Under the pieces are notes generated by a model. That model saw nothing but the letters and a program-made list of their open reading frames with translations. It ran no database searches and was not told the origin of the DNA. A DNA stretch of 64,000 bases from the sequence record OQ790161.1; one strand, 5' to 3'. Positions 3,845 through 58,927 of the stretch are shown here, one piece after another (position 1 is the stretch's first letter; each line of letters begins with the position of its first letter). Both the position numbers and the translations under genes were made by a program.

Positions 3845-4317
3845 GCCATAACCCGCATGACATCCGCGCACGCCAAGACGTGCGTGACATCGTCGATCAC
3901 TTCTTCAGTGCTCTGGAAGTCACCCTGCGCAAGGGTCAGGAGAATGGCAAACATCTCCAAGCCTTGTCGCGTAGCGGGGTCTTCCATCCTTCGTTCCTGC
4001 ACAGTCGCAAGATCGCCTATCATCCGCTCAAGGCCAAGCCGGTGGCTGATGTGGCCGAGCGCGTGGAAAGCTTCACGCTGGAACTGAACCAGCCGTGGAG
4101 TGCACTGGTGCGTGATCGTACCTTTGCCACCACTGTCATCACCCAAGTCAAGGGACTGATCGATCGGTGCGTTGAGCACATCGTCTCCCTGCCGCAGGTC
4201 GAAGACGGTCAGAACGGCAACGTTTGGTGGCCGGTGGTGATCAAGGGCAACTACACCGGCAACGGCCGCAACATCACCATCGAAATCCATTCGCGCCTGC
4301 TCAACTGGCGCACCTAA
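3841..4317 (+). CDS. Hypothetical protein
   Basis: 158-aa ORF, ATGA overlap, phage codon usage. Confidence 0.75.
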   Translation: MSHNPHDIRARQDVRDIVDHFFSALEVTLRKGQENGKHLQALSRSGVFHPSFLHSRKIAYHPLKAKPVADVAERVESFTLELNQPWSALVRDRTFATTVITQVKGLIDRCVEHIVSLPQVEDGQNGNVWWPVVIKGNYTGNGRNITIEIHSRLLNWRT

Positions 4318-10947: not shown

Positions 10948-10973
10948 GCCCTGCTTCCTTCGGGAGGCAGGGC
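10948..10973 (+). terminator. UUCG hairpin followed by CTATG
   Basis: GCCCTGCTTCC-TTCG-GGAGGCAGGGC after thioredoxin. Confidence 0.7.
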
Positions 10974-11041
10974 CTATGGCCGCCTACTTATTTTTCGAGT
11001 TAGGCGTGCGTAGTTATGTAGCTAACCAAGAGTGACCGATT

Positions 11042-18037: not shown

Positions 18038-18046
18038 CGGCATACG

Positions 18047-18066
18047 GCCCCGGCTTCGGCCGGGGC
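18047..18066 (+). terminator. UUCG hairpin flanked by GCATA/CTATG
   Basis: GCCCCGGC-TTCG-GCCGGGGC at end of nrdAB operon. Confidence 0.7.
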
Positions 18067-18132
18067 TCTATGTTCTCTACGTTGCGATTTACGGCGCAGC
18101 GTTTATCTGTGAACCCACACCTGATCGCAACC

Positions 18133-18750
18133 ATGAGCCGCCCTCCTTTCAACTACCGCAAAGTCATTCCTGTTGTTCCCGTTTTTCACGCCGATAGTGC
18201 GGCTTGTTTCATGCATGAAGGCAAGTTGTTGCGTGAGTCGGTGCAGGTGGAAGGTGTGTTGTTCGAGACTGCGCCGCTGGCCATGGATAAGGAAATCGAC
18301 CTGCTCGGTCTGTCCGGCCACAACGCGCTCGTACAGATGGGTATGCAGGACATGACCGATGATCTGGTCCCGTCGCTGGCCCTGCGTGATGTGTACGTCC
18401 AGTTCCCCGGTGACGCACCGCCGGTGCGCTTTGCCGACATGCACATCAACGATTCGTACTTCGACCGCTCGGTCGATGGACACAATCGTTTGAAGGGACT
18501 GGTGATGTACCTCAAGTACACCCAGACCTGGGGCCAGTACAAACTGCACTGGCGCGTCAGCGTGGCCGGTGAGGTCAACCTGGAAATGGCCAACATCAAG
18601 ATGTGGGGCAACACGGAACTGCAAAGCGCCGAGCCCATCGGTGATGCACCGGCGATCACCCCGCAGCAACTGCGCGACATGGATTCCTCGTTGCGTGGCA
18701 AGGTGTTGGGCTATTCGCTCACCGCCTACCGTGGCAATCGCCATTACTAA
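18133..18750 (+). CDS. Stand-alone paralog of the major capsid protein middle domain (about MCP residues 248-458)
   Basis: Colinear matches to 51434..53704: IPVV/IPVV, KEIDLLGLS/QEVDLIGIS, RSVDGHNRLKGL/KTVEGNNQLLGL, VAGEVNLEMANIKMW/VSGELNVEQGNVKVW, GYSLTAYRGN/GYTLRANRSN. Confidence 0.85.
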   Translation: MSRPPFNYRKVIPVVPVFHADSAACFMHEGKLLRESVQVEGVLFETAPLAMDKEIDLLGLSGHNALVQMGMQDMTDDLVPSLALRDVYVQFPGDAPPVRFADMHINDSYFDRSVDGHNRLKGLVMYLKYTQTWGQYKLHWRVSVAGEVNLEMANIKMWGNTELQSAEPIGDAPAITPQQLRDMDSSLRGKVLGYSLTAYRGNRHY

Positions 18751-18756
18751 GTCTAG

Positions 18757-18776
18757 GTCCCGGCTTCGGCCGGGAC
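18757..18776 (+). terminator. UUCG hairpin followed by TTATGC
   Basis: GTCCCGGC-TTCG-GCCGGGAC after MCP-domain paralog. Confidence 0.7.
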
Positions 18777-18799
18777 TTATGCTCCCCAACAGATTTTCG

Positions 18800-22436: not shown

Positions 22437-22443
22437 CTGTAAG

Positions 22444-22463
22444 CCCCTGCCTTCGGGCAGGGG
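22444..22463 (+). terminator. UUCG hairpin followed by TTTTATGC
   Basis: CCCCTGCC-TTCG-GGCAGGGG. Confidence 0.75.
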
Positions 22464-22543
22464 TTTTATGCCGCCAAACAGTAATTCGCTACACCGCTGT
22501 TCCATTTTCTGTCTACACGACCATCACCCAAGGATAGAGCGTA

Positions 22544-51433: not shown

Positions 51434-53704
51434 ATGTCCCTGAAGCTCAAGAGCCGTGGCGCTGCCCCGCTGACCCAGCTGGCACGCAACCTGGGTTCGG
51501 TCATCCGCACCTCGGCCGACGATTTCGCCTCTCCGTCCCACACCCAGCAGCTGGTTTCGATGGAATCCCTCGACCAGCACCAGGTCAATGACCTGAATTC
51601 GCGCTTCGACAACATCAAGAGCGTCATCCGTCGCGAGATCAACTCCATCAAGGGCCTGGGCCTGCAGATGGGTCTGGAATCCGCCGCCGATGCCAGCGCC
51701 GAAGATCGTGCCGAAGCTGCCGCACGCATGGAAACCGCGATCGAAGCCGGCGCGATGGCCGCGATGGCCGCCGGTGACCCGCTCGCCTACGCCCAGGCCG
51801 GCTACCACAACACCGCCGCTCCGGAAGCTGGCGTGAACGTGGTCGACACCATGGCCGGCGACGGCATGCAGGGCATGGACTACCGCGGCAACGTGGCCAT
51901 GGAAGCCTTCAACGAGAAGGAACTGCGCGACCACCTCCCGTTCTCGGTGCTGTTCAACATCTTCGCCTCGCGCCAGGATGACTTCTCCGAGATGTTCTTC
52001 CCGACCACCGTCGTTCCGCCGGACCAGGCTGGTCTGGACGTGACCGTGGCCCGCATGCAGGTCTTCAACGAGATCCGCCATTCGGCCTCGGGCGCCAAGA
52101 TCGACTTCGGCAAGCGCAACCTGATCGACGCCGCCGTCGACCACACCATCCTGGCCGACGAGCACACCCGCCTGATCCCGGTCGTGCAGCCGGACGGTTC
52201 CTCGACCGACAAGTTCATCGCCGCTGCCAAGCTGGCTCCGTTCAGCGTGAAGCTGGCGCAGCATGAAGTGCCGACCTCGGCGCTGAAGCTGGACCAGGAA
52301 GTCGACCTGATCGGTATCTCGCAGTACCAGCCGCTCCTGGGCGCCGGCGTGATCGATCACTCCGACGACGTCGATCGTCGCGTCTCGCTGGACGAACTGT
52401 ACCTGACCATCGGTGCCTCGAAGGCCGTTGCCTTCCCGGTGAACCGCCTGGCCCGTACCCAGTTCAACAAGACCGTCGAAGGCAACAACCAGCTGCTGGG
52501 CCTGCAGTTCACCTCGCAGGACCTGGTCATCGACAAGGACACCCGCGCTGCTGACGGTTCCGTCATCGCCGCCTTCGCTGGCCTGGCTTCGGCCGGTTAC
52601 ACCGTCCGCCTGTCGCTGAACGTCAGCGGTGAGCTGAACGTGGAACAGGGCAACGTGAAGGTGTGGGCTGCCAAGGTTTCGGTCGCCACCATCCAGGACG
52701 CGAACGGCAACGTCGTTCCGCAGACCGGCGGCACCGGTGCCAGCATCGTTGCTGACCTGGCCGGCCTGATCGTCGACGGTTACACCCTGCGTGCGAACCG
52801 CTCGAACGCCAACAAGCGTACCCGCGGTCACCTGCTGGACACCGTGTTCGAAACCCAGCGTTACACCATCCCGCTGGGTAGCCCGCTGTCCATCACCTCG
52901 CCGGTGAGCGGTGACGGTGGCCGTGATGCTGCTGACCAGAAGGCGCTGATCGCTGCTGCGCGCATGCGCAACACCAACAACGCCGTGACCGCGATCTTCG
53001 CGATCGCCGATCAGCTGCGCGAAGTCACCAAGGGTCCGAAGCTGCCGAGCGGTTCGCCGACCGGCGTGGGTGGCCTGGGTCGTTACCTGGTCGACGCCTT
53101 CTTCGAAGAGCACGATCTGGACCTGGTCCAGTCGATCAACTCGATCAAGTCGCAGGACCGTGCGCAGGACATCTCGAGCGTGCTGGTTTCGGCCATCCGC
53201 GACGTCGCCTACCGCATGTACCAGCAGACCAAGATCCAGCCCGCCATCGACGCCCTGACCGGTGTTGCCGGTGAAGCCCCGATCCTGCTGGTCGGTACCG
53301 ACCAGATCCTGATCCGTCACCTGCTGGTCAACGGCGATGCCCGTACCTTCGGCACCGTCTTCGACAAGGCCGTGGTCAAGGCTTCGACCGACCGTCGCAT
53401 GTACGGCAAGATCGTGATCTCGATGAGCCGCCAGGGCGCAGAAGGTCCGGATCCGCTGACCTTCGGTACCCACGGCTGGATGTCGGAACTGATCGCCACC
53501 ATGCCGATCAGCCGCAACGGCGCGACCACCAAGGAAGCGACCGTGCAGCCGCGTACCCTGCACATCAACAACCTGCCGGTGCTGGCCATCATCAGCGTCA
53601 AGGGCCTGACCAAGGTCCTGGTCGACCGTACGGCGACCCCGCCGCTGGCGGCTGCTGGTGTGAACAACGTGTACCTGAACGGCCTGAAGTACCCGTCCAT
53701 CTAA
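51434..53704 (+). CDS. Major capsid protein precursor (phiKZ gp120 homolog)
   Basis: 756 aa, extreme codon bias; propeptide with SME/GLE/AME cleavage motifs then AFNEKEL; FNIFASRQDDFSEMFFPTTVV, TQRYTIPLGSP, QPRTLHINNLPVL. Confidence 0.9.
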   Translation: MSLKLKSRGAAPLTQLARNLGSVIRTSADDFASPSHTQQLVSMESLDQHQVNDLNSRFDNIKSVIRREINSIKGLGLQMGLESAADASAEDRAEAAARMETAIEAGAMAAMAAGDPLAYAQAGYHNTAAPEAGVNVVDTMAGDGMQGMDYRGNVAMEAFNEKELRDHLPFSVLFNIFASRQDDFSEMFFPTTVVPPDQAGLDVTVARMQVFNEIRHSASGAKIDFGKRNLIDAAVDHTILADEHTRLIPVVQPDGSSTDKFIAAAKLAPFSVKLAQHEVPTSALKLDQEVDLIGISQYQPLLGAGVIDHSDDVDRRVSLDELYLTIGASKAVAFPVNRLARTQFNKTVEGNNQLLGLQFTSQDLVIDKDTRAADGSVIAAFAGLASAGYTVRLSLNVSGELNVEQGNVKVWAAKVSVATIQDANGNVVPQTGGTGASIVADLAGLIVDGYTLRANRSNANKRTRGHLLDTVFETQRYTIPLGSPLSITSPVSGDGGRDAADQKALIAAARMRNTNNAVTAIFAIADQLREVTKGPKLPSGSPTGVGGLGRYLVDAFFEEHDLDLVQSINSIKSQDRAQDISSVLVSAIRDVAYRMYQQTKIQPAIDALTGVAGEAPILLVGTDQILIRHLLVNGDARTFGTVFDKAVVKASTDRRMYGKIVISMSRQGAEGPDPLTFGTHGWMSELIATMPISRNGATTKEATVQPRTLHINNLPVLAIISVKGLTKVLVDRTATPPLAAAGVNNVYLNGLKYPSI

Positions 53705-53768
53705 TGGCCGGCCTGCTTCTGAGCAAGCGCGTTTCCGCAAGGTAGTAGCCTACTGAACGGACATAGAT

Positions 53769-53790
53769 CCCCCTCCCGAAAGGGAGGGGG
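53769..53790 (+). terminator. GAAA hairpin after MCP, flanked by CATAG/TTTATGC
   Basis: CCCCCTCCC-GAAA-GGGAGGGGG. Confidence 0.78.
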
Positions 53791-53980
53791 GTTTATGCTG
53801 TCTAGTGAAAAAACCTTGGAACCTATACTATCTCTTAGTGTAGCCAGCCTTGGTTATGCATTGTCCTTGCAAGAAGCCTGACTAGATGAGTCAAACAACT
53901 CCACGCCAAGCACGTAACTACCGTACGCAGGTGGTGGCCATTGCCGGAGGCCAAGATGAATATGCCCCGGCACAGCCGAG

Positions 53981-55128: not shown

Positions 55129-56754
55129 ATGGACAGTCATCTGTTCCGACTGATCGACGAAAAGCACATCCCTCACTTCAATCCTCGGATCGTCAATGGA
55201 CTGGCGACTGAGGAGATGAAGCGAACGGAAGCCTATATCACCCAGGTTCTTCGTACGGCCACCGCTGAATTGGCACCGGAGCTGGTGTTCAAGGAAATGG
55301 TGCGTTGCACTCCGCGAGAGGAGTACAACGAGATCGTGCGCCGGGTTGGTATGCGCAACACCATCGAACATGCGCGCAGCGACATGTACATGGTGAAGAT
55401 CATCTTCGAACTCAACGGTGAAGCACTGCCGCCGCGTTACCTGTATCTGCCCACTTGCCGCCGCGGTGGACTGATGACCATTCGCGGTAGTATGTTCGCT
55501 GTCTCCCCGGTGATGGCCGACAAGGCAATCTCGGTGGGCCATAACTTCATCTTCATCCCGATGGCATGGGACCGGATGAACTTCTACCGTACCCCGCAGT
55601 ACTTCTACGCCAACGAGAAGCAAGAAGCGGTGGATGTGGCCTGGTCCAAGATCCATCACTACAAGCTCAAGGCACGACGCACCAACTCCAAGATGGACGT
55701 GCGTGCCAACACGGTGCTGCCGCATTACCTGTTCGCCAAGTACGGTCTGACGCGGGTGTTCGATGAAATGGCCAACACGCAGATCGTGGTGGGCAGTAGT
55801 CGTGAAATCACCACCGAAGCGTATCCGCCGGGCGACTGGATCATCTGCCGTTCCACCATGTTCAAGCCGCGCACGGTGAAGGACAAGAACTACGTGGGTC
55901 CGGACATCCGTCTGGCCATTCCGGCTGCTGACTGGAATGCCTCGGTGGCCTCGCTGGTGGCAGGCTTCTTCTACGTGGCCGACTTCTTCCCGGATCGTGT
56001 TACCCCGGATGAAGTGGATGAACCGCGCCTGTGGCGCATTCTGCTGGGTTACATGGTCTTCGGGCCGGGACACAGCGAAGGCAAGCTGGCCGAGGACATC
56101 AACGTCCACATGGGTTCGCTGGACAACTACATCGAAACCCAGACGCGCAAGCGCTTGGAAGATGTGGGCGTGTATGTGGAAGACATCTATCAGCTGTTCA
56201 TGCATCTGATCGAGAAGTTCGACTTCTACATCACCCAGTCCACCACCAACCTGTCCAGCAGCTATGGCAAGCGGCTGATGGTGCTGCCGTATGCACTGTC
56301 GGATCTGACGTGGGCAATTCACCGCTTCATGTTCACCGCCACCAGCCAGCGCAAGCGCAAGCCGCTGACCAAAGACGACGTGCTGAAGATCCTCAACAAG
56401 ACGTTGAAGACCAACACCGCGTTCAAGATGAACAAGCAACACGGCGAAGTCAATCCGGTAGCTGTGCCGGGCGACAACCTGTACTTCAAGGTGACCTCGC
56501 ATGTGGTGCTGCAGGAATCGTCCTCGGGTGGTCGGGCCAAGACCCGCTCTTCCACGGATGATCCGTCCAAGGTCCTGCACATCTCTGTTGCCGTGGCCGG
56601 CAGTTTCAACACGATGGGCAAAGCAGAGCCGACCGGCCGCGCGAAGCTCAACCCGTGCACGCCGCTGTCCACCTACGACAACGAGATCCAAGAGAATCCC
56701 GCACTGATCAACATCACCCGCGCAACGCAGGCGATGATTCAGCGCGACTCGTAA
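55129..56754 (+). CDS. Non-virion RNA polymerase beta subunit, N-terminal part (phiKZ gp123 homolog)
   Basis: Y.YLP....GG.M.IRGS.F.VSPV.AD...S, HYLFAKYGL, SLD.YI, YGKRL.VL.Y.L.D patterns; synteny with MCP and helicase. Confidence 0.78.
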   Translation: MDSHLFRLIDEKHIPHFNPRIVNGLATEEMKRTEAYITQVLRTATAELAPELVFKEMVRCTPREEYNEIVRRVGMRNTIEHARSDMYMVKIIFELNGEALPPRYLYLPTCRRGGLMTIRGSMFAVSPVMADKAISVGHNFIFIPMAWDRMNFYRTPQYFYANEKQEAVDVAWSKIHHYKLKARRTNSKMDVRANTVLPHYLFAKYGLTRVFDEMANTQIVVGSSREITTEAYPPGDWIICRSTMFKPRTVKDKNYVGPDIRLAIPAADWNASVASLVAGFFYVADFFPDRVTPDEVDEPRLWRILLGYMVFGPGHSEGKLAEDINVHMGSLDNYIETQTRKRLEDVGVYVEDIYQLFMHLIEKFDFYITQSTTNLSSSYGKRLMVLPYALSDLTWAIHRFMFTATSQRKRKPLTKDDVLKILNKTLKTNTAFKMNKQHGEVNPVAVPGDNLYFKVTSHVVLQESSSGGRAKTRSSTDDPSKVLHISVAVAGSFNTMGKAEPTGRAKLNPCTPLSTYDNEIQENPALINITRATQAMIQRDS

Positions 56755-58863: not shown

Positions 58864-58877
58864 ACCGGCAGCATAAG

Positions 58878-58901
58878 CCCCCGCCCGATCAAGGGCGGGG
58901 G
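58878..58901 (+). terminator. Hairpin flanked by GCATAAG/TGATATGC
   Basis: CCCCCGCCC-GATCAA-GGGCGGGGG. Confidence 0.72.
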
Positions 58902-58927
58902 TGATATGCCACAACTAGGACAAGATA

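Follow-up and report, generated by a model that had tools for sequence, protein, structure and literature searches.

A stand-alone capsid insertion domain in Xanthomonas phage RTH11 belongs to a broad, fast-evolving accessory family of nucleus-forming jumbo phages

Far from its structural genes, Xanthomonas phage RTH11 (OQ790161.1, 312 kb) encodes a second version of a single domain of its major capsid protein (MCP). We analyzed a window of 64,000 nucleotides of this record (window coordinates are record coordinates minus 124000, and all positions below refer to the window unless another record is named). We are very confident that the open reading frame (ORF) at 18133 to 18750 is a functional, selectively maintained, stand-alone paralog of the insertion (I) domain of phiKZ-type MCPs and that it belongs to a broad accessory family. 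We think it probable that the protein has its role within the infected cell rather than as a component of the shell. The explanation of its role that fits best, which sequence comparison leads us to offer tentatively as a possibility, is counter-defense against capsid sensing by a soluble accessory protein that would work through I-domain-type contacts. The features on which the comparison is built are as follows.

18133..18750, + strand: coding sequence of the stand-alone I-domain protein (205 aa, 23.1 kDa, pI ~6)
51434..53704, + strand: MCP gene, phiKZ type (756 aa; Pfam PF25620, E 2.3e-214)
52172..52807, + strand: part of the MCP gene coding for the MCP's own I domain (residues 247 to 458), the paralogous counterpart of the ORF

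A preliminary description of this DNA had proposed a free-standing copy of the MCP middle domain and had made the significance of the alignment a point to be checked. A single colinear BLASTP alignment joins ORF residues 14 to 202 to MCP residues 247 to 458 at an E value of 7e-17 (27% identity, 50% positives), which is significant, and the proposal is borne out by matches of the ORF to Pfam PF25620 PhiKZ_MCP (E 3.6e-16; 58.9 bits, with a cut-off of 27) and to PHROG 3231, "major head protein" (E 5.6e-13). The Pfam match covers profile positions 146 to 240 of 635 only. The MCP-like motifs quoted in that description are present in the BLASTP alignment, and the motifs IPxVP, TAPL, DLLGxS, GxxDxTD, and GYxLxAxRxN are common to the ORF and the phiKZ-type MCP I domain. 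The description was also right that the propeptide and flanking MCP regions are missing and that no shell could be built from this protein alone: the ORF aligns to the I domain only, starts ~11 residues ahead of the first I-domain strand, and has no N-terminal propeptide, N-arm, linkers, P domain, or A domain, and hence no full HK97 core. With the I domain as its sole part, the protein is not a capsid subunit and cannot serve as one in the shell. Within the I domain itself, a segment of ~25 residues found in the MCP is missing from the ORF. The remaining positional claims, a distance of 33 kb from the capsid gene and a setting in a nucleotide-metabolism block, agree with what we found, as the ORF lies 33.3 kb upstream of the MCP gene and is preceded by genes for thioredoxin, PhoH, and the ribonucleotide reductase (RNR) subunits alpha and beta. 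Searched by sequence against Pfam and the PDB, the ORF returned MCP matches only, with no Tad1 or Tad2 domain, and the PDB relatives of the RTH11 MCP itself include phiKZ gp120 (8y6v).

In phiKZ gp120, an N-arm and the P and A domains are accompanied by an I domain (residues 248 to 472) that is an elaboration of the HK97 E-loop, rests on the A/P junction of the neighboring subunit, and pairs with a second I domain across capsomer boundaries (PMC11297242). The arrangement of I domains in the Goslar capsid is the same as in phiKZ (PMC13742148). The middle domain copied by the RTH11 ORF is this phiKZ-type I domain, a surface domain of the capsid with clean boundaries. An AlphaFold model of the ORF built on a 31-sequence family alignment is confident (pLDDT 92.7, pTM 0.87; the single sequence alone gave pLDDT 35), and the predicted structure holds the I-domain fold only. 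A Foldseek search of this model against the PDB returned only the MCPs of phiKp24 and phiKZ (E 1e-10 to 1e-11, TM 0.68 to 0.72 on the query), and phiKZ gp184 was not among its structural matches. Core motifs, including a polar C-terminal R-x-N-x-N motif, are retained in both free and MCP-embedded I domains. The residues that form the I-I interface in phiKZ (R296, D366, K415, and D424) show no conservation, whether in MCPs or in free copies, and are for that reason uninformative on whether capsid binding has been retained. ORF residues 110 to 157 (window ~18460 to 18603), a β-hairpin region, matched designed Kelch-like "SAKe" propellers in the PDB (E 2.6e-6) as well as 14 repeats in a 3490-aa metagenomic protein (P0005), which is probably a repeat-like or compositional resemblance.

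The gene has been annotated too short. In GenBank, the coding sequence WJJ55076.1 runs from 18211 to 18750 (179 aa), a start that lies 26 codons too late. We prefer the start at 18133 because homology to the MCP begins upstream of 18211 and because the AlphaFold model places a strand at residues 11 to 13. The orthologs P0002, P0003, and P0004, all of which start with M(S/K)RPPF, support this choice, and 18211 was rejected since starting there would cut off the conserved N-terminus along with the first I-domain strand. A still earlier ATG at 18070 was rejected as well: relatives do not keep the longer ORF, and the codon itself belongs to the TATG located just after the upstream hairpin. The annotation of the RTH11 gene calls for correction accordingly.

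An ortholog with 78% identity occupies the same position in a metagenomic relative (L006). Between the two, dN/dS is 0.08 to 0.18, similar to neighboring genes, and the ORF is under purifying selection. The preliminary description had named a dN/dS of about 1 as the sign of a decaying gene; we found low values and an intact frame. The idea that part of the MCP gene was duplicated and left the ORF as a decaying or untranslated relic can draw on its ATG, which has no Shine-Dalgarno sequence before it, but it is contradicted by the selection data, by a length and start kept in four lineages, by a confident and compact predicted fold, and by clean domain boundaries, and we give it next to no weight.

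Further orthologs with 48% and 43% identity were found in the same slot, in the order RNR alpha, RNR beta, g122, a variable small gene, and the I-domain gene, in genomes of 310 to 315 kb. The slot is shared by at least four RTH11-like genomes, and both the length and the start of the ORF are conserved across four lineages down to the 43% identical copy. In the syntenic Xanthomonas phage LucasX, a different gene occupies the slot and the I-domain gene is absent. RTH11 and the relative L010 have nothing between g122 and the I-domain gene; the same space holds a 107-aa gene (phrog_35913) in L006 (3568 to 3891) and a 124-aa gene in L018 (7558 to 7932). The genes downstream of the I-domain gene differ among relatives too, and the stretch that follows the RNR genes acts as a hot spot for accessory genes.

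The ORF is set off from its neighbors by the following signals.

18046..18067, + strand: upstream GC-rich hairpin, terminator-like, closing the g122 transcription unit (9 bp stem, TTCG loop)
18069..18072, + strand: TATG directly after the upstream hairpin, by analogy a promoter or start site of the non-virion RNA polymerase
18079..18121, + strand: gene-specific leader with two boxes, ACGTTGCGATTTAC at 18079 to 18092 and GTGAACCCACACC at 18109 to 18121
18756..18777, + strand: downstream hairpin, terminator-like (9 bp stem, TTCG loop), followed by TATG at 18778 to 18781

The bracketing of the ORF by UUCG hairpins and TATG, as first described, was confirmed: both hairpins exist, with nine pairs, a TTCG loop, and a TATG after each. 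They share an identical 14-nt core that is found only twice in the window, and the upstream hairpin is kept in relatives L006 and L010. GC-rich hairpins of at least 8 bp, many of them with a TTCG loop, that have TATG(C) within 4 nt occur 22 times in the window, on both strands, where 1.7 would be expected; examples elsewhere lie at 10948 to 10978, 22441 to 22470, 53766 to 53797, and 58877 to 58908. The late promoter consensus of the phiKZ non-virion RNA polymerase is (-3)TATG(+1) (PMC7618050). By analogy, the TATG at 18069 to 18072 is a putative promoter in RTH11, the hairpin and TATG together look like a combined module of terminator and non-virion RNA polymerase promoter that punctuates the genome, and the ORF would form a small transcription unit of its own. 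Because the module is found genome-wide, it gives no expression timing. In all four lineages, the ATG comes after the 55-nt leader with both boxes, also when an extra gene is inserted upstream; counterparts lie at 3897 to 3945 in L006, 9945 to 9995 in L010, and 7945 to 7995 in L018. We considered the leader as a conserved RNA structure and as a recurrent promoter motif and rejected both, since no conserved fold was found and the boxes do not recur within the window.

The preliminary description treated the gene as a singular oddity, and here our results differ from it. An exhaustive phmmer search of 1.84 billion representatives returned 126 hits, ~45 of which are free or fused I-domain proteins from metagenomes; the others include MCPs of ~720 aa. 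About 30 complete proteins of 157 to 235 aa consist of the I domain alone, and the HMM envelope of the domain spans residues 1 to 205 of 205 in the RTH11 ORF. Extensions were found at the C-terminus in five members and at the N-terminus in approximately nine, and one member has two I domains in tandem. The latter, a metagenomic protein of 645 aa (P0006), carries its I domains at residues 1 to 230 and 234 to 468, followed by ~177 residues without a recognizable family. As for the distribution among related phages, which that description had put forward as a check, orthologs sit in the same slot and the family is sporadic among cultured phages. Across 50,697 records of cultured phages, sequence searches detected a second I-domain locus in RTH11 and Phabio only; phiKZ, Goslar, LucasX, and the majority of cultured relatives lack the gene. 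A structure search of viral models added further small proteins with the I-domain fold in RP12, 201phi2-1, pEt-SU, and others. Members were hard to reach by other routes: a word-indexed protein search recovered few of them, even with a profile, and a degenerate-pattern search for loci with the ORF protein alone returned nothing in IMG/VR. Bacterial genomes yielded no relative of the RTH11-clade protein. AgentSmith gp56, annotated as a "putative major capsid protein," was considered as an I domain and rejected by Pfam. Altogether, the family is old, fast-evolving, sporadic, and accessory, and it belongs to nucleus-forming jumbo phages. The I domain itself is already known, and the proteins come with precomputed Pfam matches; the stand-alone family is new in the literature that we searched, where we found no paper mentioning RTH11 and none describing a separately encoded I domain or this family.

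In trees of I-domain segments, the RTH11 protein falls inside a set of 35 to 40 rows free of MCPs; the set has 39 to 40 rows and SH-aLRT support of 96 to 99 in quick trees, and 35 rows and a bootstrap of 77 with SH-aLRT 96 in a careful tree. Given the long branches, this grouping of free copies apart from MCP-embedded I domains is provisional. Outside the main free clade, 201phi2-1 gp106, Phabio gp274, and three metagenomic proteins are placed with phiKZ-type MCPs, and this placement of gp106 and gp274 suggests that free I domains arose at least twice independently. A comparison of evolutionary rates was made for one genome pair, RTH11 and IMGVR_UViG_3300011559_000001 (L028).

MCP HK97 core, RTH11 vs IMGVR_UViG_3300011559_000001: 94% identity, dN 0.04
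MCP I domain, RTH11 vs IMGVR_UViG_3300011559_000001: 74% identity, dN 0.17 to 0.20
Free I domain, RTH11 vs IMGVR_UViG_3300011559_000001: 43% identity, dN 0.51 to 0.58

In this one pair, the free copy evolves ~3 times faster (by dN) than the MCP's own I domain. Within the MCP, the faster rate of the I domain relative to the HK97 core is consistent with diversifying pressure on an exposed surface. The free copies are about as similar to their own MCP as to that of the other phage (31% versus 31% identity, and 28% versus 27%) and thus do not track the cognate I domain. A recent duplication from the phage's own MCP was rejected on the same grounds, together with the separate positions in the tree. 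The RTH11 protein is homologous in sequence and fold, over its full length, to the I domain of phiKZ-type MCPs (phiKZ gp120 residues 248 to 472, PDB 8Y6V; Goslar; phiKp24), and it differs from that domain in being encoded alone, in missing a segment of ~25 residues, in its ~3-fold faster evolution, and in its grouping with other free copies.

A gene that is sporadic, fast-evolving, and lineage-specific might be a weapon against competing jumbo phages, with a dominant-negative I domain that poisons the assembly of co-infecting relatives while sparing the phage's own capsid. Competition by interference among co-infecting chimalliviruses is on record for a different gene (PMC11620839). We consider this role improbable, as nothing specific supports it and it leaves the fusions to Tad1-like and Tad2-like domains described below unexplained.

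Two cultured phages, whose hosts are laboratory Pseudomonas strains, provide named members of the family.

Phabio gp274, L016 5671-6618: 315 aa, an N-terminal extension and an I domain only
201phi2-1 gp106, L023 3228-3794 (record 55727-56293): 188 aa, acidic (pI 4.7), directly after the gene for chimallin gp105

Phabio gp274 is named "major head protein" in RefSeq, and the real Phabio MCP is encoded ~82 kb away; the RefSeq name is an automatic mis-annotation that calls for correction, and it shows how free I-domain proteins come to be auto-annotated as "major head protein." The membership of 201phi2-1 gp106 was established by profile comparison (hhalign probability 98.7%, E 2e-16). The 201phi2-1 match in the structure search is likewise 188 aa long, and its UniProt accession is adjacent to that of chimallin gp105. 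A tblastn search with gp106 returned no relatives in cultured phages. In the 201phi2-1 record, gp198, gp200, gp138, and gp139 are flagged as identified by mass spectrometry of virions and gp106 carries no such flag. For the RTH11 protein, a probable absence from virions is argued from this record annotation of a remote homolog in a separate lineage. The metagenomic member P0074 lies two genes from a chimallin gene, and a tblastn search with a metagenomic chimallin gave no cultured match. All of the neighborhoods that we examined are arrays of small or metabolic genes, and none lies in a head or tail module.

These neighborhoods bear on the possibility that free I domains decorate or cement the capsid, perhaps at low copy, for example by occupying the I-domain pairing sites that lack a partner where a portal takes the place of a penton. 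The natural partners of the parent domain, the A/P junction of a neighbor and another I domain, would suit such a role, as would the retention of the core motifs, including R-x-N-x-N, in free and embedded copies; decoration proteins are typically accessory and modular, and the ORF has a TATG promoter-like element of the type used by phiKZ late genes. However, the I-domain sites of the lattice are all taken by the MCP's own I domains, the gene was never found in a structural module or encoded with head morphogenesis genes, 201phi2-1 gp106 has no virion flag, the ~25-residue segment of the MCP I domain is missing, and the phiKZ interface residues are conserved in neither group. A decoration role is weakened by these observations, and we regard it as unlikely. 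Small, dispensable, and sporadic binders of the capsid surface, namely T4 Soc and Hoc, lambda gpD, and phiKZ gp35 and gp244, are the class with which such a protein would be compared; unlike the RTH11 protein, they have folds unrelated to the MCP, are present in virions, and are usually encoded with structural genes. T4 gp24, the vertex protein related to gp23, offers a second comparison. It is a complete HK97-fold shell subunit, its gene adjoins that of gp23, and it is structural. Like gp24, the RTH11 protein is a second copy derived from a capsid protein and retained in one genome; unlike gp24, it copies the insertion domain only, is encoded far from the structural genes, and cannot tile a shell.

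The position of two family members beside the chimallin gene (P0074 and gp106) would also suit a regulator of the phage's own capsid pathway. Such a regulator could be a chaperone or cap that keeps assembly from starting too early or going off-pathway, with the free I domain covering the surfaces through which capsomers pack, or it could modulate how capsids travel to or dock at the phage nucleus. A core assembly factor would be expected to be conserved, however, and this gene is sporadic, with no copy in phiKZ, Goslar, LucasX, or most cultured relatives; furthermore, it evolves much faster than the MCP to which it would have to be fitted. We find such a regulatory role rather unlikely.

Clues to function in the family also come from its fusions. 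Three members (P0020, P0045, and P0114) combine the I domain with a C-terminal Tad1-like domain (PDB Tad1, E 1e-12; phiKZ gp184, E 1e-14), and P0074 carries an N-terminal Tad2-like domain (PF11195, E 8.5e-8, above threshold) followed by the I domain. Tad1-like and Tad2-like domains are two unrelated anti-Thoeris sponge folds, and they occur on separate branches of the family. They account for two of approximately eight kinds of fused extension; searches of Pfam, PHROGs, and the PDB returned nothing informative for the other N- and C-terminal extensions. In phiKZ, gp184 is a Tad1 whose N-terminus is wedged into the inner capsid surface and whose C-terminus is freed by the head protease and injected. 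As a capsid-packaged Tad1, gp184 already links capsid biology and counter-defense in these phages. Major capsid proteins, for their part, activate the TIR proteins of Thoeris (PMC12578639).

The gp184 precedent also admits a different use of the I domain, as an adaptor that brings itself, or a cargo such as Tad1 in the fusions, into or onto the procapsid for delivery to the next cell, and the I domain is indeed fused to a Tad1-like domain closest to gp184. Yet the RTH11 protein is free of cargo, the I domain of the MCP points outward while packaged proteins lie inside, the I domain is C-terminal in the Tad2 fusion, gp106 is not flagged in virions, and gp184 is not among the structural matches of the model. 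We hold little expectation that the protein serves in this way.

Counter-defense fits best because it accommodates the sporadic distribution, the very fast evolution, the non-structural context, the probable absence from virions, and the fusions to two different sponges. Among the roles proposed in the preliminary description, the soluble decoy gains indirect support from these features, and it is weakened as strict mimicry by the equal distance of the free copy to its own and to a foreign MCP. Under a counter-defense role, the protein would be made as a soluble, non-virion product of its own small transcription unit and would work through I-domain-type protein contacts. It may act as a decoy that occupies host sensors of the exposed capsid I domain without activating them or, alternatively, as a mask that binds newly made capsid protein or capsids and hides that surface. 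In fused relatives, an I domain joined to a Tad1-like or Tad2-like sponge might provide a two-pronged block of capsid-triggered TIR or cyclic-nucleotide immunity. Several observations weigh against counter-defense. The free copy is 27 to 31% identical to the phage's own I domain, no closer than to a foreign MCP, and is thus not a faithful surface mimic; a trigger-like protein could activate a sensor rather than block it; and the Tad1 fusions could reflect capsid targeting, since phiKZ gp184 is packaged in the capsid. In addition, the RTH11 protein has neither a Tad domain nor a predicted ligand-binding fold, which leaves the I domain itself as the only possible source of any anti-defense activity. 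Extended to the whole family, counter-defense would make free I domains a recurrently evolved class of nonactivating decoys or cloaks directed against capsid sensors (Thoeris TIR, CBASS, CapRel-type, and STAND), fused in some lineages to Tad1 or Tad2 so that one protein blocks both sensing and signaling. We put this generalization forward as a doubtful one, if worth keeping in view.

The capsid protein is among the phage components most often sensed by bacterial immunity, and when jumbo phages form a nucleus, few other abundant phage products stay exposed in the cytoplasm. Free copies of its outer domain that appear to have more than one origin, evolve faster than the capsid, and are in some cases fused to sponges point to an undescribed layer of capsid-centered conflict or regulation. 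A parallel for the proposed decoy is DSAD1, which inhibits DSR2 by competing with the trigger for the sensor; in both cases the protein would occupy a site at which a structural phage protein activates an immune sensor. The trigger-competing inhibitors known, such as DSAD1, are not homologs of the trigger. No decoy derived from the trigger's own domain is described in the literature that we searched, and a decoy or cloak of this kind, if the reading is true, would be a categorically new mechanism. As for phiKZ gp184/Tad1 and Tad2, the resemblance lies in the Tad1-like or Tad2-like domains of relatives of the ORF, and the RTH11 protein has none.

A further free I-domain gene, P0049, lies within L029 4412 to 7451 among small genes that include BubE and a cyclophilin-type isomerase, with cpYpsA, which carries a SLOG-type nucleotide-binding domain, two genes downstream. 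These surroundings may represent a conflict-related neighborhood.
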